Shown piece after piece: positions 5,014 to 54,872 of a stretch of DNA of 64,000 bases (within the stretch, counting starts at the first letter, position 1; each line of letters begins with the position of its first letter). The position numbers and the translations under genes were made by a program. The stretch lies in sequence record NC_029103.1; one strand, written 5' to 3'. The notes under the pieces were generated by a model. It made no database searches and had not been told where the DNA came from. It worked only from the letters and a program-made list of their open reading frames with translations.

Positions 5014-5415
5014 ATGAGCTGGTCAAATTGGGTTAGATCAGAGTTCAACGACTTACATCCAGAGAAGTACGCCAGAGACGCATTACACACGNTNNTATTA
5101 TTCGAAAGAGGGGAAATAGACTATCCTGAAGTAACACTGAAACTTGCAGGAGATGAGGCNTGGTCTGACGCCTTCCCACCTTTGAAGTAAAGCGTTACAC
5201 GACCTTGTACTCTTAAATAAAAGACGAAATAAAANAGAAACGGCATACCTGACGGCACGCCAGTACCTGACTGCGTTAAGGAGAGAAATAACTNAAGGAA
5301 GCTAAGAAACGCGGGATACTGCAAAACGTTAGAGGAATGGGCTAACGGNTACGAAGAAAGCTATGATTTTGAACNAGNTAGGGTGATTAAGAAAATGGGT
5401 TTTTTNCTGATCTAG
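5014..5415 (+). CDS. ATV p131/p145-like structural protein paralogue, frame broken in consensus
   Basis: GEIDYPEVTLKLAGDE matches the recalled ATV p131 core; reading continues KALHDLVLL.. across indels in an N-rich stretch. Confidence 0.6.
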
Positions 5416-12482: not shown

Positions 12483-15400
12483 ATGAACAGCAGGAAGAAA
12501 GTACTGGTTGTTACCCTATTCCTGTTATTCTTAATTGAGATAACACCAACAATTGTCACTAATTCGCAAACACCACCTTCAGCTTCAGCATATGTTGGGA
12601 GCATTAGTGTGTCTTCAAACCCGTTCATCTTAAATACGACGTTACCAGCGATAAACCAACTAGGGTCTAATGTAAGGTTCTTCCAATACCCTAACTTGAC
12701 GGGACAGCTGTACGCATACGAACAACAACTACCGCAAACGATACCCACTGTGGATAGTGTCGAGTCTACGTCCTGGAAGGTATTACCATATTGGGAAAAT
12801 GGTGAACTGGTGATGAACGATACTGCAAATATTATTAATCAGTACATTGCATGGAGATATTCGCCAGTAAGCAACACCATTAATATTACCATCCACGTTA
12901 CATCATTCCCAAATAGTAGTAATACTGGTAATGCTGGCTTTGGTGTCTACTCACCTAACATAGGAGACCAATCAAATGATAATAATAATGGTTTCTATGC
13001 GTTAATAGTGGACTTCCACGGCAACACGATATGGTTCCATCCCCCAACATCTGGTTATGAAAAGCTTTACACTTCTTTACCTCAACCTAACCCCGACTTC
13101 CCATTTACCTTCAGTGCGATACTTACTGAAAACTCTGCGGGAAACATCACTGTGTCTACTGTGTACATCAACTCAACGGCTTACTCCGTAAATATAAACA
13201 CTCCTTTCCCGTGGAGCGAGATAGGTTACATTGGAATAAGACCAGGTGCTGGTAACTTATACTACGTCTCTTACTTCGGCGTCTCTCCAGCACCTTACGG
13301 CGGTGTCGAACAATTTGTGAACGACGTGGAGTCAACGTCATGGAAAGTATTACCATATTGGGAAAATGGTGAACTGGTGATAAACAGTACTGGAGCAAGT
13401 TATGGTGGTCAGTATATTGCCTGGAAATATTCACCAATATCAAACACAATCAACGTCACCATCCACGTGACGTCGTTCCCATCCAGAGGCGGTCAACCTG
13501 GTATTGTTGTCTACTCACCTAACATAGGAGACCAAACAACTGATGGTAATAGTGGCTTTTACGTGCTACTGGTGGACTTCTATGACAACACGATATGGTT
13601 CCACTCTCCAACATCTGGTTTCACACAGATTTACACTTCTCTGCCTCAGCCTAACCCCAACTACCCATTTACCTTCAGCGTCATCTTGACGGAGAACAGT
13701 ACTGGTTACATTACTGTGTCTACTGTGTACATCAACTCAACGGCTTACTCCGTAAATATAAACACTCCTTTCCCGTGGAGCCAGATAGGTTACGTGGGGA
13801 TAAGAGGCGATTTCGGAAGTGGTGGTAATAGCTTATTCTACGTCTCCTACTTCGGTATCACACAGCTGTTAGACGCATACTCTCTTGTTACTAACCTTGC
13901 CACGAACACACCTTACACTGGCACAGTTTACGTAGCAGTCTTCCCATACCCTATCAGCTACGACGTTTACGTATCACCAGCATCAGTTGTAAACTCTCAG
14001 TCCCCTCTCCCCATGTTCTCACCTTCATTTACTTCAACCACCACGCCCTACCCCGTGGTTTCGACTAACGCGAACTTCGGCGTCATAAATATATGGACTA
14101 CTTCGGGATCCGTTACGGCGAGTAGCGGTACAGTCATCCCTTCAATAGGTGCGTGGACTTCCGTCTCCCTCTCTACGAATACCGTCCCGAACTTCCTCGT
14201 TAACGGGACAGTAAAGAGCGGTAGTGTAAGCGGTAATACAATCACACTAAGCGGGTTGACTGGTACTTCAACTGTAGTATTTCCAGATAACTTCATACCT
14301 TCTTCAACGGCTGGAGTGACGACATACAACGCTACGTTTAACGAGATAAAGACTACGGCTTCTTCCCTAACTTTCACAGTCAACACACAAATGTTTGAAA
14401 GCGGTGTACCAGTGATAGGGGCAACTCTCGGTGAGAACTGGTATTACTACGGCTTCTACTCTACTGCGGGTAGTTACAACGTACCGTTATTCCTAACTAC
14501 GTTAGCTGTAGGGAACCAGATTTATGCGAATATTCCAATGGTTGAAAGTACAGGTTGGAGGGTCTACCCTTATTGGGAAAATGGTCAACTAGTGATAAAC
14601 AGTACTGGAGCAAGTACCTGGGGTCAGTATATAGCTTGGAGATATTCCCCAGTAAGTAACGTGATCAACATAACGATCCACGTGACGTCGTTCCCAGAAC
14701 AGTCTGGTGCCGCCAATACTGGTATTATCATAATGTCACCTAACATAGGAAACCAATTACGCGATGCTAGTTCTGGTATATACTGGTTATTAGTTGACTT
14801 CTACAGTGGCTACATATGGTTCATTTTTCCAGTACGTGGTATGATACAGCTTTACTCTTCACTGCCTCAACCCAACCCCAATTATCCCTTTACCTTCAGC
14901 GTCATTTTGACGGAGAATTCAGCGGGCAACGTCACAATACAGAGCGTATACATTAACGGCACGGCTTACACAGTGAACGTCAATACTCCGTTCCCGTGGA
15001 GCGAGATAGGTTATGTGGGAATAAGAGGTTTCACTGGTAGTAATAATGAACTTATTCTACGTNTCNTANTTCGNCGTCAACTCAATTCCNTTAGTCTCTT
15101 CCTCAGGCGTCACATCCTTTAACTTCTATTCGCCGTTCTCTCTCTCCTACACTATCACAAANACTTCGATCACAGTCCAAAACACACAGCTGGTTGANGG
15201 NGAAAANTACCTNACAATTCCAGGCACTAACGGTATCATAGGGGCGTCTTTCNCNTTTTATAATGTAACGTATAACGTCCCAGTCCTTGCAGTGTCTTCA
15301 TCTCCTNTATCCGTGACATATAACNCACAAACACTAACTNTNACAGTAATTTCNNCATCTCAGTCATTCCTAGTTTCGCCTTTCGGAGTACCNGAACAGA

Positions 15401-38617: not shown

Positions 38618-38763
38618 ATTTGGTCAATCATATGTATGCCAACGAGAATATTTAAGTTTTCTGCATAACCCGTTAGGAGGAAAAGCGGGTTGAGGTGTGT
38701 GGTGAGGAGAGAGGAAATAAGACCTCAAACAGTTGTTTGAGAGAAAGAGGGAATAAAAAAGAA

Positions 38764-39216
38764 CTAGCAAACTTCAGCAGTTGATCTAATTTTAATTATA
38801 TACCTGCCAGAAGACAGTTTTTTAGAATATATTTCGTAATACACTGTACACCAACCAACGTATTCGTTATGATAATCCCTACCTTCAATTAACAACTTTA
38901 GTTCTTGTAATGCCTTATCCTTCAATGTCTTTGCTTTCTTCTTCTTTTTGTTTTCCCACATTACTTCTAATTCATAACCAAGATCGGGGTCTGGGTCATG
39001 TTCAAACGTATAGTGCATGTCAAGTTCTTCATAACTTTCAGCGATAAAACCACAAAGTTTGCAAAAATACAATTTGTTTTCTTCTTGAATTTTATTTTTC
39101 TTCTGAGTAGTGCTACTTCCCATGGTTTTCGCCACTATAGTATTCGTTATGGGAATATATAAAATTTCTGCCAAACAAGTTAGGCAGTAAATGTTAGAAC
39201 AAACGTGGTAAAACAA
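38764..39216 (-). CDS. C2H2 zinc-finger protein
   Basis: FCKLCGF..SYEELDMHYTFEH. Confidence 0.7.
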   Translation of the reverse strand: MFYHVCSNIYCLTCLAEILYIPITNTIVAKTMGSSTTQKKNKIQEENKLYFCKLCGFIAESYEELDMHYTFEHDPDPDLGYELEVMWENKKKKKAKTLKDKALQELKLLIEGRDYHNEYVGWCTVYYEIYSKKLSSGRYIIKIRSTAEVC

Positions 39217-39516: not shown

Positions 39517-39661
39517 GGCACTTAATTACTGGTAAGTCTGGTATTTAAAATTTCTGCTCAACAAGTTAGACAGAATCGACGAGCTGTGTACACTGAAAAC
39601 AACTCTAAAACAGCTGTTGTTTAAAATCGGATTAAAAGAGAAGGAGAAGGGAAAAAAAGAA

Positions 39662-47455: not shown

Positions 47456-47900
47456 GTAGAAATATTGTANNANNANTAATATTTTATTTACCCCGTTTAT
47501 ATCTGTGGTTCTTTTTTATACNAGTAGCGATATTTTATTTACGTAGATATTTATTGAGACAGTTCTTATATTTANAGTGATATTTTCCCTATCAAATTTT
47601 ATTCTATGCTACGAGTNATAATAATATCTCTCACTTGTAAAAGATTTTCAATAATAATATTTTACATGTTTTGTTTTTGCTCAATAACATGCCAAATTCT
47701 CAAAATGTTTCGATTTTNNTAGCCAAACTATTTGGTTGAGGGAAATCGTGAATACGTAGAACTATGGTTAAGGTAAATTAAGCAGTTTTGAAGGACTGGG
47801 AACTAACCTATTATACTAATTAAATATAAACAAAAACATATTTTCAAAAAGCCGACTTCTTCCCCTGCCANGGCAGGTCTTTCAGTCCCTGGCACTGAAT

Positions 47901-48947
47901 CTATGATGAATGCGTCAACCGTATCTTGAAACTGTGAACGCGGGGATGTTTAAACACCAGAGTCCTCAGGACATTGTATGTAAGCTTTTTGACATGCCTC
48001 TCTTTTCTGTATGTATACTCTACAATAAAGCGACCAAAACCTATTTTGTAGTCTTGTTGTTTTTTCTTTTTCTTCTCTTCTGACTTAGATTTTGCATCAA
48101 ACTTCGGAAAAGCCTCATAAACCTCTCTTGCCTCTTTCCTACGTTGTTTTTTCTTTTTCTTCTCTTCTGACTTAGATTTTGCATCAAACTTCGGAAAAGC
48201 CTCATAAACCTCTCTTGCCTCTTTCCTGCGGTTGTCTCTTAGGAGAAGCAGTATTACTGCTATTTTGATAACGTGTATATTATTGATTTTTGAGAACTTA
48301 TCAAGTAGATTTAGGTAGCCGTACTTATGCAGAAGATTGTATTTGTACTCTTCTATGAACTTTCTGCGTATTTCTGCTTTCGCTTTTATTTCAGCTTCTG
48401 ATAAATACAGTTTATGATTTAAAATATAATTCAAATTCTTTATCGTATTGGATAGTTTTTGTCTTGCGTTATCCTCATCGTCCTGAGTGAAATTCAGAAT
48501 AATTGGTATGACAGAGTCAAATTCAACGTTACAGTACTTTATAGCAAAAGCACCGATGATATACAGCTTTCCTCTTATTTTGTTGTTGGCAATTACTTTT
48601 TCTGCAATTGTTGTAAAGAGAGCTTTTTGTGTAGAATTTGTAATTAAAATAGATAGTCTATACGCGAACGTATAGTAATTTTGTTTTCTTTCAAAAAACT
48701 TTGTAGGAAGAGTACCAATACCTCGGTTTGGTAAGAGAGCGTAATGGTGTTGGTAATGAGAATAGAGTTTATCGGCTTTAGATTCTTTTTCTAGTCCTTC
48801 CGTGTTAGTAACTAAAAACATGTCGTAGTCATAGTCAATAACTTCCCCCGTATCCGCACAGACGGTGTAGATACCGTCTGTGATGATTTCTTTACAATTG
48901 TCTGTTTGAGTTAGACTGATTTGGTTATGAACGATAGCTTCTGTCAT
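47901..48947 (-). CDS. Divergent TFB/TFIIB-like protein (Zn ribbon plus cyclin-like helices, basic C-terminal extension)
   Basis: C..IITDGIYTVCADTGEVI resembles the TFB Zn ribbon; RL..L..A.K...IRGK...A....C resembles TFB core repeat 1. Confidence 0.55.
   Translation of the reverse strand: MTEAIVHNQISLTQTDNCKEIITDGIYTVCADTGEVIDYDYDMFLVTNTEGLEKESKADKLYSHYQHHYALLPNRGIGTLPTKFFERKQNYYTFAYRLSILITNSTQKALFTTIAEKVIANNKIRGKLYIIGAFAIKYCNVEFDSVIPIILNFTQDDEDNARQKLSNTIKNLNYILNHKLYLSEAEIKAKAEIRRKFIEEYKYNLLHKYGYLNLLDKFSKINNIHVIKIAVILLLLRDNRRKEAREVYEAFPKFDAKSKSEEKKKKKQRRKEAREVYEAFPKFDAKSKSEEKKKKKQQDYKIGFGRFIVEYTYRKERHVKKLTYNVLRTLVFKHPRVHSFKIRLTHSS
48056..48229. repeat. 87-bp tandem duplication (RRKEAREVYEAFPKFDAKSKSEEKKKKKQ x2)
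   Basis: Units start at 48056 and 48143. Confidence 0.95.
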
Positions 48948-49134
48948 ACTGAGTCTCAGTCATAAACAGCTGTTTAAAAATATTTAACACCATTAACAGG
49001 GTAGTATCCTTGACAAAACAAACGGCAAGCATAGCCCCTTCTAGGGGAGGACGTCAGACGGAGCTAATTATCCTTGAGAAAGAATACAAGAAGATGATGA
49101 GGAAAAAAGGCAGGGTAAAAATTAATTTGATTTA

Positions 49135-49374
49135 CTATTTCTTCTGACTTATATACTCTAGTACTTTCTTTAAATGTAAGTCTTGTTTCTCTCTATTGCT
49201 TATTTCCAAGGCTATTTTTATTGCCCTTAACAATGTGTCCCTTTGCTTTCTCAGTTTTTCGTTTTCTCTTTCGAGTCTTTCTATCTTTTTCTCTAAGACT
49301 GTTATGGTATCTAGTGCCTTTCTATATTCAATTTCTAGTTCTGTATTTCTCTGAATGATGTCTTTTATTGTCAT
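49135..49374 (-). CDS. Coiled-coil protein
   Basis: Heptad region LEKKIERLERENEKLRKQ; start MTIKD fits TATA/B-box spacing. Confidence 0.65.
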   Translation of the reverse strand: MTIKDIIQRNTELEIEYRKALDTITVLEKKIERLERENEKLRKQRDTLLRAIKIALEISNREKQDLHLKKVLEYISQKK

Positions 49375-49564
49375 GTTATTCCCTAGTCTATATGTTTTTA
49401 GTTGATATTTTAAGCTTTCTGTCAAACGAGTTAGGATGATACTGAGGGTAAGAAAGAGAAGTGGAAATAGACATTAGAAGAAGGAGAGAGAAATGGATTA
49501 GGTTAGGGGCTAAAAATAGAAAGGATAAAATAAAAAATAACGTAACTTGGTACCGTTATAACCG

Positions 49565-49741
49565 TTATAACCTTATTTTCTCTACTTTAGCAACAGGAAC
49601 GTTCTCTTTTTCTAATTCTCTCCTTACAAAATCCTTGATTGCTACTCTGATAGCTTCTGACCTATACATGTTATTTCTTATTGCATATCTGTCTAATAGT
49701 TCCAATAGGTCTTCTTCTACCTTAAATGTTACGACTCTCAT
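49565..49741 (-). CDS. aCcr1: 58-aa ribbon-helix-helix repressor, aCcr1 (cell-cycle regulator) homologue; absent from the ORF track
   Basis: Hand translation: [58 protein letters not shown]; length and pattern match recalled aCcr1. Confidence 0.85.
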
Positions 49742-49755
49742 TTTTCCCCGGTTTA

Positions 49756-49764
49756 AGTATTACT
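49756..49764. promoter_or_regulatory. 9-bp palindromic box between TATA and ATG of the aCcr1-like gene; probable autoregulatory aCcr1 box
   Basis: AGTATTACT; TATA at 49774-49780 (minus). Confidence 0.5.
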
Positions 49765-49912
49765 CTTGGTTGGTATTTAAGCTTTCTGGCTAACGAGTTA
49801 GGACGAAAGGGCGAGACGGTTAGAATGACTCTGTATAACAGCTGTTTCATAAAAAATGGGGGTTCAAAGCAGGTGGAAAGCCTCGTCCCTTAGTGCTGGG
49901 TAGCTCAATTGG

Positions 49913-50164
49913 TTAAGAGGACAAAAGTTCACGCTCTAACTTGTCTAATTTGTCCCTCGCAGTATCAATAATATATCCTACTTGGTTTTCCATCGAATCT
50001 ATGAGGTCTTCCACCACATTATCTTCTACTTTGTAATGTTTACCGTTAATTTTTACGTTTTTCCCTTCAATACGAATAAAGTAATCATGTGACTTTACCC
50101 CTGATTGCAAAACCAATTTTATTACGTCAGATAGAATCTGTCTTGAATATTTATTGAAATCCAT
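49913..50164 (-). CDS. Hypothetical protein
   Basis: 83-aa ORF. Confidence 0.6.
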   Translation of the reverse strand: MDFNKYSRQILSDVIKLVLQSGVKSHDYFIRIEGKNVKINGKHYKVEDNVVEDLIDSMENQVGYIIDTARDKLDKLERELLSS

Positions 50165-50226
50165 CTTAATTTTGAAAACTTCTTCAGGTTCACCGTCACT
50201 TTTTCTTTTTTTAATAGTGAGCGATT

Positions 50227-50820
50227 TTAGAAGAGAATAAAAACACTATAAATGTATTCTGGAGAATCTGCCTCATAGAAATGTAACTTAGGGGTTCTAT
50301 GCCTGTATGCATAATCTATGAAAACTTTATCAAAATCTAACGTAAAATGATGGGATGAGAAATCTTTTTTGATATAGGAGAGTATTGTATGTACAAGTTT
50401 GCCTATTAAATTTGACATTTTATTTTTGTCTGCTTCCATCTCTTCCCCGTTAACGTTTAGTACAAAGATATCTTCAACAAATTTTTTCATAACGTATTTT
50501 AACTCCACTGAATTACCAAACTCGCTTAAAATCTTCCCAATCTGCTTTGAAAGATTAGAGTTATCGGTATTCTTATTAACCAGTTCAAAGTTTCCCGAAA
50601 AGCGGTCTTCTATGCTTACCTTATAACCAGTCTGGTTTATAGTGAATGTAACGCTACCTCCAAGGTAATTTAACCTAAGGGTTAATATCTCTCCTGGAAC
50701 TTTGTTGTAGCGGATATAAGATCCAAGCACATTGTTACTTAACAAATGCTCATTTTCCGTCAGTTCCTGTTCCTTCTTTTCCTTTTCGCCCCAGAACTCC
50801 TGAGACATTCTGCCCTCCAT
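50227..50820 (-). CDS. Hypothetical protein
   Basis: 197-aa ORF with palindrome promoter. Confidence 0.7.
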   Translation of the reverse strand: MEGRMSQEFWGEKEKKEQELTENEHLLSNNVLGSYIRYNKVPGEILTLRLNYLGGSVTFTINQTGYKVSIEDRFSGNFELVNKNTDNSNLSKQIGKILSEFGNSVELKYVMKKFVEDIFVLNVNGEEMEADKNKMSNLIGKLVHTILSYIKKDFSSHHFTLDFDKVFIDYAYRHRTPKLHFYEADSPEYIYSVFILF

Positions 50821-51005
50821 TTTATACTCTCAAACAGCTGTTTAAAAATGTTCTGCCATGAACCGCAGGGTAGCACGAATGATTTCCTCACTGATTGAAA
50901 ACCTTAGGTATCAAGGAGCTGAGAAAAAGAGTGTAAAGCAAAGGAAAGAACGGAGCGAATAATATAAAAATAAGAAATGTATAATATAGGGGGAGGGGAA
51001 AAGAG

Positions 51006-51689
51006 GTGGGTCGTTCAATCAATATATCTTCTTCGGAGGTTAATAAACCTTTTGCTCAAATAATTTATGATGTAAAGGGAGAAATTATAAGGACTTTTGG
51101 AATTTTGAGGAAAAAATTACTCGGAGTAAAGGACGTAATCGACCTTATAAACATACCGGCGTGGATAAAATCGCGTCTAAAGGACGAGAACGGTAGTGTA
51201 GAAGTATTAGAAGAAGGATACGGGAATAGAATACTCATAATTAAACTGGAGGATCCAGTGACCGATGACTGGACTAAGAAACAGAGAAAAACGGCTTTCG
51301 TTATCTATTTCTCATTTCAAACTTCAAAGCCCGTCGTACCTGCTCAACTACCATGGAAACTCAATCAGATCTACAAAATTGTCAATAAACTGCGAGCCAA
51401 AGGTTATCATGTTTTCCCTGGAATCGTTGCTTTTTCATTCACTCAAGGAGCCAAAGAAATACTAAAGAAACATAAAGTAGAAGCATTTACAACGCTGGAC
51501 TCGGTAAAACAATGGATATATAACAAGATAATTTTCAGATTACAAAAATTAGTTGAAATAGCAAAATTCACATTTAAATTTGACAAGATATTTGTCTTTC
51601 TCAGGTCGATCATTCAGGAGCTGGGCTATGATATCCCAGACCAGCTCCTTGAAGTTTGGGCATTAAAGCCCAAGTTCCCGGAGCGTTGA
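51006..51689 (+). CDS. Basic protein, possibly restriction-endonuclease-like fold; flanks the putative origin
   Basis: GIVAFSFTQGAKE..K..V resembles Mrr-type REase C-termini; no clear catalytic motif. Confidence 0.45.
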   Translation: MGRSINISSSEVNKPFAQIIYDVKGEIIRTFGILRKKLLGVKDVIDLINIPAWIKSRLKDENGSVEVLEEGYGNRILIIKLEDPVTDDWTKKQRKTAFVIYFSFQTSKPVVPAQLPWKLNQIYKIVNKLRAKGYHVFPGIVAFSFTQGAKEILKKHKVEAFTTLDSVKQWIYNKIIFRLQKLVEIAKFTFKFDKIFVFLRSIIQELGYDIPDQLLEVWALKPKFPER

Positions 51690-52311
51690 AAAAGGCAGAG
51701 GGTCTGTCATCTAATTCTATCAACTATTTTTCTCAGTCTTGTAATAAATATTCAGAGGACATTAAACTTCAAAATTAATTTCAAAATAATTCTTCTACCT
51801 TTTATAAAATTCTTTACAATTCAATCTTGTAAAGTTGTGACTTATTACAAAATTTTCACATAGAACTACACTATTTTCATTTTATTTCTTTATATTAACA
51901 GAAACTCTGGAAAGACGTGAACAGAAATAAATTACAATTATTAAGGGAATGAACAGATATTTTTCCTAAAATAACGTGTTTTATAAAGAGAAATTTTTAG
52001 GATAAGGGCAAAAATTAACGACGTGAACAGAACCAGGGTGACTGTTGCACGTATATAGTATACTGTAAAAGTAACTATATCTAATAATCTAATCTAATAT
52101 AAGGAACTACTAGGACGAGCTACTGCAAAGTACGTAGTTTTTAGTAAAGGCAGTACACACTACAGCACACCACTGTACGCTACAGCACTCCAACCTGGCT
52201 TTAACACACCCTTACTTTTTGTTTATTATATTAAGGGGTTAATTTCGCCGAGTTGTTACTTTTTCACTAAGTCTCTTAGTCTAGTGATAAAAATTAGGAT
52301 AAAGTTATAAA
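51690..52311. other. Long AT-rich non-coding region, putative replication origin
   Basis: No ORF of 60 aa or more; repeated TTACAA/TTGTAA in both orientations; GACGTGAACAGA twice. Confidence 0.4.
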
Positions 52312-54468: not shown

Positions 54469-54822
54469 ATGAGATGTTTTAAGGTTCAGGAGGTAATTTG
54501 CGTAGATGAAGAAGAAAAGATCATGATAAACCTTACAAGGAGAAAATATAAAATTTTAAAGGACGAGGAATACTTCAAATTAATAGAGGAGTTAGAGAAG
54601 TACGGTAAAGAGTTAGAAGTTTTCGTCATAGCAGATCATCGGTACTTTCCAAGGACTTATTATGCTATTTATAGTATCAAGGTCGGTACANCNATATACT
54701 ANTATTTTNTGGANNTTTANGACGGTAGNAGTGCANNNTATTCNTATNNTTTNTGNAAGNNAAGNAANGAATGNGAGAGTANCATTAATGACTTAGAAGA
54801 AGANAACATAGCGATGNNNTAA
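54469..54822 (+). CDS. Hypothetical protein, paralogue of 54873..55340
   Basis: Shared Y[FY]PRTYY.IY motif. Confidence 0.65.
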   Translation: MRCFKVQEVICVDEEEKIMINLTRRKYKILKDEEYFKLIEELEKYGKELEVFVIADHRYFPRTYYAIYSIKVGTXIYXYFXXXXDGXSAXYXYXXXKXXXEXESXINDLEEXNIAMX

Positions 54823-54872
54823 TTNATTTTTTCTTTTTTGTTTTCTCTCTAAAACAGCTGTTTGAGGTATTT

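Follow-up and report, generated by a model that had tools for sequence, protein, structure and literature searches.

The window analysed here, a stretch of 64,000 nucleotides, corresponds to bases 1-64000 of the circular, 64,323-bp genome of Sulfolobus monocaudavirus SMV3 (Bicaudaviridae; KP282677.1 / NC_029103.1), and a megablast search with positions 48000-52000 returned the SMV3 record at 100% identity with coordinates unchanged. On its minus strand, at 49565..49741, lies gp63, an open reading frame (ORF) of 58 aa plus stop that encodes a ribbon-helix-helix (RHH) protein related to aCcr1, the repressor of cell division in Sulfolobales, and a perfect 9-bp palindromic aCcr1-box occupies 49756..49764 in the promoter of that same gene. 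A first-pass annotation, made from the letters of the sequence, had described the ORF as unannotated. The 58-aa RHH ORF is present as described, and it already stands in GenBank as AXI69_gp63 / YP_009226286.1 under the product name hypothetical protein.

Read on the gene strand, the region upstream of gp63 consists of AACAGCTGTT (49846-49837), CTAACTCGTTAG (49801-49790), CAGAAAGC followed by TTAAATA (49788-49774), a 9-nt spacer, AGTAATACT (49764-49756), the leader TAAACC-GGGG-AAAA and the ATG at 49741. We thus recover both the palindromic box between TATA and ATG and the upstream "A+B cassette" of the first-pass annotation, with A at 49837-49846 and B at 49774-49801. The A element is the AACAGCTGTT palindrome (49837..49846), which is found ~95 nt 5' of the ATG and is near-invariant in relatives. 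The B element, made up of CTAACTCGTTAG and CAGAAAGCTTAAATA and recurring before the neighbouring gene gp62, combines the core promoter (49774..49788, minus strand) with the inverted repeat CTAAC-TC-GTTAG (49790..49801). The core promoter comprises a TFB recognition element (BRE)-like CAGAAAGC at 49781-49788 and the TATA box TTAAATA at 49774-49780, with one base varying in relatives; the inverted repeat adjoins the BRE as the operator of the B cassette and belongs to a predicted early / anti-defence promoter class. The GGGG at 49746..49749 (minus strand) is invariant in relatives and may serve as a Shine-Dalgarno-like element in the short leader.

With respect to the protein, the Pfam family RHH_1 covers residues 4-41 of gp63 (E=4.7e-8, 33.2 bits versus a cut-off of 20.5), and the closest cellular relatives are single-copy 58-aa Sulfolobales proteins, with 76% identity to P0044 of S. 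islandicus (SisCcr1) and 72% to P0043 of S. acidocaldarius (SacCcr1). We take P0044 and P0043 to be aCcr1 because several of the substitutions between them, namely Y23T, M38L and R47T, are among the SisCcr1/SacCcr1 differences given by Yang et al. (NAR 2023, PMC9976878; statements from this paper refer here and below to the accessible part of its text). Residues 1-21 of gp63 are the same as those of SisCcr1 without a single difference, and R2, K7 and R27, whose alanine mutants (R2A, K7A, R27A) lose DNA binding and phenotype (Yang et al. 2023, PMC9976878), do not vary in the alignment of gp63 with its homologues. The resemblance to aCcr1 that had been proposed from the sequence therefore holds up in direct comparison. 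In a poorly resolved tree of 58 columns, gp63 and its relatives fall within a large aCcr1 group that is split (84/90) from a clade of SMV4-like and second RHH proteins, and Yang et al. (PMC9976878) assigned gp63 to clade I. A PDB sequence search with gp63 gave no match at E<=0.1; AlphaFold models of these proteins have been reported by Li et al. (NAR 2023, PMC9976892).

The first-pass annotation had referred to SMV homologues of aCcr1 as established division repressors, and the gp63 ORF turns out to be that very protein, published as SMV3_gp63. Over-expressed in S. islandicus REY15A, it caused growth retardation, enlarged cells and multiple chromosomes; the protein was also purified, and the Introduction of the same paper names the aCcr1-box as the site at which the proteins, cellular and viral alike, bind in the cdvA promoter (Yang et al., PMC9976878). 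In a parallel study, YP_009226286.1 was synthesised and expressed in S. islandicus LAL14/1, leading again to growth retardation, with 43% enlarged cells that had 3-4 chromosome equivalents (Li et al., PMC9976892). The core finding, a viral copy of a host division repressor, is thus already in print since 2023 for exactly this protein, and since gp63 itself was the subject of that work our analysis adds nothing to the division-arrest story. It is very likely that gp63 acts as a repressor of the aCcr1 type and can arrest cytokinesis of the host, with the published experiments and the sequence in agreement.

The box in the promoter of gp63 reads AGTATTACT at 49756-49764 and AGTAATACT on the gene strand, forming a perfect 4-1-4 palindrome at -23..-15 from the ATG, and it satisfies both published motif definitions, i.e., the consensus A(T/G)G(A)TA(G)A(T/G)TACN and the AGTATTA by which Li et al. 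(PMC9976892) define the aCcr1-box. It starts 9 nt downstream of the TATA box. Because the usual archaeal distance from TATA box to transcription start is ~26 nt, we predict a start at about 49751-49754, which would therefore place the box at roughly -12 to -4.

Across the window, the 9-mer AGTAWTACT occurs in 4 copies versus 1.3 expected, a marginal excess that is reached in 3 of 100 shuffles. The other three perfect copies, at 12918, 16083 and 48250, lie inside gp14, gp15 and gp61, so that only the gp63 copy sits in a promoter, where a full box would arise by chance in the ~25 positions of the TATA-ATG interval with a probability of ~5e-4 (arithmetic from the window count). A survey of the 60-nt upstream regions of 85 annotated SMV3 genes found the full 9-bp palindrome at gp63 only. 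The sole other strict 8-mer falls within an operon, in the 14-nt junction of gp41 and gp40, and relaxed and AGTATTA matches are mostly reversed TATA boxes. With no promoter-wide enrichment of the box among these 85 regions, we rejected the idea that gp63 regulates SMV3 promoters in general. We also set aside a candidate second box, GTAACATT (49725-49732), ~32 bp from the first: it merely reflects the codon choice GTA-ACA-TTT for V-T-F and is uninformative, as most homologues, the cellular genes among them, use these codons. Neither the aCcr1 papers nor a wider literature search yielded any reference to autoregulation or to a self-box, and own-promoter, autoregulation or feedback wording was not found in the 2026 paper on aCcr1/2/3. 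The conserved self-box is a modest lead for which we found no earlier report.

To describe conservation, we aligned seven distinct versions of the promoter (proteins 76-100% identical), obtained with metagenomic relatives whose proteins have 76-90% identity. Three islands are conserved: AACAGCTGTT (replaced by AACAGCCGTT in one of the seven versions and by AACAGCTGTA in one), the inverted repeat with BRE and TATA box, and AGTAATAC-N-TAAAC-N-GGGG. Within the last of these, AGTAATAC is invariant in all seven and 8 of the 9 box positions are without change, the lone substitution inside the box (T to C) falling on the N of the consensus; the 9-nt spacer beside the box has five variable columns and an indel in the same versions. 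Beyond these close relatives, two Desulfurococcales homologues with otherwise unrelated promoters have AGTAATAC or AGTATTAC at -23..-15. When homologues are considered more broadly, a strict box is present within 100 nt upstream in 14 of 51 non-redundant regions versus 1.2 expected from flanking DNA, which corresponds to a Poisson probability of 4e-11 if uncorrected for relatedness and to ~3e-5 (arithmetic) after collapse to ~8 lineages. Among the lineages with a strict box are SMV3-like viruses, the two lineages of Desulfurococcales, one Sulfolobaceae genome and further viral contigs.

The promoter that carries this box is one of a set. The B pattern CTAACnnGTTnGnCAGAAA has 14 matches in the whole window versus 0.27 expected, and the element CTAACnnGTTnG-CAGAAAnnTTAAATA precedes gp46, 47, 48, 62, 63, 69 and 71, which on the basis of CTAAC-nn-GTTAG joined to CAGAAAnnTTAAATA defines a putatively co-regulated promoter set. 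The fused sites are at 38658-38676, 39165-39183, 39551-39569, 49416-49434, 49783-49801, 53639-57 and 54406-24; additional CTAAC-nn-GTTAG sites are found at 1177, 16179 and 52911, with weaker versions at gp03, 16, 68 and 79. This is in line with the work by Bhoobalan-Chitty et al. (2024, PMC11065993; again with reference to the accessible part of the text), who gave consensus regulatory sequences per virus, SMV2-4 included, for predicted early / anti-defence genes, and who regarded inverted repeats overlapping the BRE in SMV-type viruses as a probable repressor site, with a leucine-zipper protein proposed as the reader of the repeat. Their supplementary table contains SMV3 gp46, 47, 48, 62, 63, 69, 70 and 71, with gp63 entered as pADG.01 'ADG/Acr, rhh CopG family, putative transcriptional regulator' (PMC11065993).

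The inverted repeat CTAACnnGTTAG with BRE/TATA upstream of gp63 is an instance of this published promoter class, and the cassette is thus already known. Like the other members, the gp63 promoter has the SMV-type consensus, with a strong BRE/TATA and a BRE-overlapping inverted repeat common to several SMV3 genes; what sets it apart from them is an extra, putative second operator downstream of the TATA box. In the accessible text of PMC11065993, no mention of the aCcr1-box was found. Early timing was shown for the SIRV2 (Sulfolobus islandicus rod-shaped virus 2) class, from which the method was extrapolated (PMC11065993). We give early transcription of gp63 an even chance, the promoter-class prediction being its sole support.

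Taking these observations together, we consider it probable that gp63 is the SMV3 copy of aCcr1, expressed from a B-class promoter and subject to negative feedback through its self-box. By analogy with the family, a gp63 dimer would read the 9-bp palindromic aCcr1-box with its N-terminal beta-strands. As published for these repressors, formation of the pre-initiation complex would be prevented, so that cytokinesis stops while DNA synthesis and growth go on and the cells become enlarged and polyploid. Driven by its own strong viral B-class promoter, predicted to be early, gp63 would accumulate until it also occupied the box in that promoter and blocked recruitment of RNA polymerase, and this feedback would limit the amount of a protein whose over-production is toxic. 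The host proteins aCcr1/2/3, which recognise similar sequences, could share the box in the gp63 promoter.

An operator that overlaps the gene's own core promoter is a trait of autoregulated RHH repressors, for which gp63 has a candidate in its perfect box, and a precedent for self-binding exists in SIRV2 gp21, which binds its own gp20-gp21 promoter in an electrophoretic mobility shift assay. Autorepression of gp63, or its control by host aCcr1-3, via the self-box is plausible on these grounds, and we lean towards the self-box being a functional operator for gp63, for host aCcr proteins, or for both. We are more tentative, and place the chances somewhat below even, about a further step in which the box would tie a viral early gene to the host cell-cycle repressor network, with host aCcr1/2/3 gating the firing of the promoter and gp63 then capping its own level.

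Several observations weigh against the proposed feedback or limit how far it can be generalised. The whole gp63 promoter has 82% mean column identity among close relatives, and because the entire promoter is well conserved, conservation of the box discriminates only moderately. An AT-rich element is found at the same place in all B-type promoters, with an AGTA start in 4 of 7, and a role as proximal promoter or initiator could account for part of the box conservation. Between TATA and ATG, a good box is missing from the aCcr1 genes of S. islandicus and S. acidocaldarius, and no strict box was found in ATV (Acidianus two-tailed virus), ATV2, STIV (Sulfolobus turreted icosahedral virus)-like viruses and SIRV2, where the homologue is inside an operon; a self-box is thus not a universal trait of the family. 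Two boxes are needed for full affinity at cdvA and one is enough at segA, and gp63 has one. The effect of gp63 was milder than that of cellular aCcr1 (Li et al., PMC9976892). A transcriptome of SMV3 was not found in the literature. Finally, many N bases are scattered in the window, e.g., at 5372-5382, 9956, 20598, 47460-47600 and 54700-54870, which suggests a metagenome-assembled genome. SMV3 is said, with reference to Gudbergsdottir et al. 2016, to come from Yellowstone metagenomes.

Among other explanations, the box might mainly be a docking site for host aCcr1, aCcr2 or aCcr3 and provide cell-cycle gating rather than self-limitation, a reading that is compatible with autoregulation and that we find unlikely as the main function. 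It draws on the perfect match of the box to the host consensus and on the three cellular aCcr proteins, whose target sequences are alike and whose phases of occurrence differ; moreover, a site bound by gp63 should suit SisCcr1 too, since residues 1-21 and R2/K7/R27 are identical in both. Reliance on host repressor levels would, however, make gp63 expression uneven across an asynchronous population, and gp63, once produced from its strong promoter, would be likely to exceed the host proteins in number at the box. We assign a similarly low probability to the box being the AT-rich proximal promoter or initiator of B-type promoters, conserved as core promoter and resembling an aCcr1-box by chance. 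When promoters are aligned on the TATA box, gp48 (AGTAATTAAG), gp69 (AGTATAAGT) and gp71 (AGTATAAAT) are indeed AT-rich at an equal distance, many AGTATTA matches are reversed TATA boxes (e.g., TTTTTAATACT at gp04, gp26 and gp51), and the window-wide count of the 9-mer is barely raised. Yet the full match of 8-9 nt is found only at gp63, the one gene whose product recognises that sequence, and the TAC half is absent from the other B-type promoters; an accidental likeness would also have to account for the same box at the same position in unrelated Desulfurococcales promoters and for the family-wide enrichment.

It is quite improbable that gp63 acts chiefly on the virus, as an Aca-like or anti-defence regulator that silences viral early promoters, with the division phenotype a side effect of over-expression. 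The promoter-based pADG.01 'ADG/Acr' listing (PMC11065993) points in this direction, as does SIRV2 gp21, which also binds viral middle/late promoters. On the other hand, the other B-type promoters (gp46, 47, 48, 62, 69, 71) lack an aCcr1-box, and because the operator that they have in common, CTAACnnGTTAG, is a different repeat, gp63 does not appear to be a general repressor of early promoters; in addition, gp63 has 76% identity to an essential cell-cycle regulator of the host and brings about the same phenotype. Least credible of all is a toxin-antitoxin pair in which gp63 would be the RHH antitoxin (VapB / DUF6290-like), a reading prompted by sub-threshold Pfam matches to DUF6290 (E=0.0028) and VapB_antitoxin (E=0.14) and effectively refuted by the gene context: gp63 is monocistronic with its own promoter, its best relatives are single-copy cellular aCcr1 orthologues, and no neighbour is toxin-like, gp62 being a coiled coil and gp64 and gp61 having no PIN or other toxin domain in Pfam.

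Feedback through an operator in the gene's own promoter has well-known bacterial counterparts. P22 Arc and Mnt, plasmid CopG and the MetJ family are small RHH dimers that place a beta-ribbon in the major groove of a short palindromic operator, and their operators overlap their own promoters, giving negative feedback as proposed here for gp63. These proteins are bacterial, work in a sigma-70 context and usually occupy two half-operators as a dimer of dimers; for gp63, in contrast, a single 9-bp palindrome lies in a promoter of the archaeal TBP/TFB type, and the main targets are host genes.

Closer to home, cellular aCcr1 (SiRe_0197 / SiL_0190 of S. islandicus; Saci_0942 of S. acidocaldarius) resembles gp63 in its length of 58 aa, its single RHH domain, its published over-expression phenotype and its recognition sequence AGTAWTAC(N), which is the box in the gp63 promoter. 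It differs in that gp63 is virus-encoded and has a viral B-type promoter instead of ATACCGCTCCAGAnAATAyTTAAAC, and in the central helix region (NNMY in gp63 versus YGLN, and VAIKDF versus KAIEKM). SIRV2 gp21, from a rudivirus, likewise belongs to the viral RHH proteins of the aCcr1 clade; it recognises AGTATTA in host promoters, that of cdvA among them, and stops division. Its identity to gp63 is ~52%, and it is encoded inside an operon, whereas gp63 is monocistronic with a canonical box; self-binding by gp21 must use something other than the canonical box, because we found no strict aCcr1-box in the SIRV2 gp19-gp20 intergenic region. ATV gp29/gp27 and the CopG-like protein of ATV2 show that aCcr1-clade RHH genes are also present in other large spindle-shaped viruses, with identities to gp63 of 58.6% for ATV gp27 and 56.9% for ATV2 (copies matched directly; ATV gp29 was not scored separately). 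ATV_gp29 had the same over-expression phenotype in the same study as gp63 (PMC9976878). ATV has two aCcr1 homologues and SMV3 one, and the ATV genes, unlike gp63, are part of the operon gp25-gp29, which comprises five genes and lacks a strict box in its promoter.

If the proposed feedback is real, a self-operator would explain how a growth-arresting regulator can be placed behind a strong promoter without overshoot. Should host gating apply as well, the division block would be both phase-dependent and dose-limited. More tentatively, the enrichment of strict boxes in several independent lineages would make auto- or cross-repression a general and so far undescribed design feature of the aCcr1 family. 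A self-operator also leads one to ask if cellular aCcr proteins act on the viral genes of this family and viral ones on the cellular genes, a point of relevance to the 'braking-point' model of the cell cycle in Sulfolobales.

On the cellular side, the Sulfolobales aCcr1 loci (L118, L120 and L010-L025 in our set) have the common promoter ATACCGCTCCAGAnAATAyTTAAAC. In the S. islandicus and S. acidocaldarius genes, box-like elements occur only further upstream, at ~-70..-57, and the degenerate elements found at about this position upstream of the cellular promoter read GGGAATACT, AGGAATACT, AGTATTACC or GGTGTTACC. In some species the cellular aCcr1 gene has AGTATTA or AGTATTT at -21..-15, within about -22..-12. 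Together, these elements may hint at auto- or cross-regulation among aCcr1/2/3, for which no mention was found in the aCcr1 papers.

Downstream of gp63, gp62 (49135..49374, minus strand) encodes a 79-aa coiled-coil protein that is a conserved neighbour of gp63-like genes and for which Pfam gives only weak coiled-coil matches below cut-off (e.g., ZapB, E=8e-4). It is driven by a second copy of the B-type promoter, CCTAACTCGTTTGACAGAAAGCTTAAAAT (49407..49435, minus strand), which has no good aCcr1-box; the nearest box-like site, AGTATCATC at 49436-49444, is just upstream of the repeat and has 3 mismatches to the 9-mer. In relatives, the order is a gp63-like gene, a second RHH gene (52-56 aa, SMV4-like clade) and then a gp62-like coiled-coil gene. 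Comparison of three second-RHH loci (L004:3178-3501, L005:3178-3552 and L009:1196-1562) with window positions 49375-49564 shows that SMV3 has no second RHH gene and that the B-type promoter driving this gene in relatives directly precedes gp62 in SMV3. Upstream of the second RHH gene of L009 (1330-1345), a perfect AGTATTACT adjoins the CTAAC repeat, and L004 has AAGTATTGCT; in some relatives, a gp63-like protein may thus also control the neighbouring operon. A comparable arrangement is found in virus YNP1 (NC_029027.1, 34335-35052; L117), where gp61-gp62-gp63 encode an aCcr1-like RHH protein, a small ORF and a coiled-coil protein with 50% identity to SMV3 gp62 (E=4e-4). Given this same gene order, the pairing of an aCcr1 homologue with a coiled-coil gene is kept across different virus groups. 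A relationship of gp62 to the leucine zipper SMV2 gp37, the proposed reader of the inverted repeat, was considered and dropped, as a tblastn search with gp62 matched only SMV3 and YNP1.

The A element AACAGCTGTT is present in 20 exact copies in the window versus 0.1 expected, mostly in intergenic positions. The sites include 6081, 22581, 32942, 39284, 39609, 41730, 42562 and 43866, as well as 46834, 48965, 49837, 50833, 52674, 53590, 54347 and 54853, and AACAKMTGTT variants have many more copies, nearly all intergenic. Typically, the element comes after a TTTTTAA TATA-like run and sits 10-15 nt 5' of the ATG (gp03, 05, 06, 09, 16, 19, 22, 23, 61, 65 and 72); alternatively, it is found ~95 nt upstream at the B-type promoters of gp48, 63, 69 and 71. 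A similar ACAGCTGTT is present in the ATV gp24/gp25 intergenic region. A literature search on AACAGCTGTT returned nothing relevant; it is probably the mark of a second promoter class or the operator of a viral regulator.

Beyond the A element, we considered GGGTAGCTCAATTGGTTAAGAGG at ~49889-49911 as a tRNA or att site and discarded it, with no ARAGORN match and no Rfam match at E<=1 over 49300-50100. Further upstream, gp65 (197 aa) and gp64 (83 aa), together covering 49913-50820, match a single 298-aa ORF of the close relative L002 with 96% and 90% identity, in the same frame and joined across ~50240. Because that ORF is continuous in the relative, gp65 and gp64 would be parts of one SMV3 gene interrupted by an in-frame stop, the result of a real nonsense mutation or of an error in the assembly.

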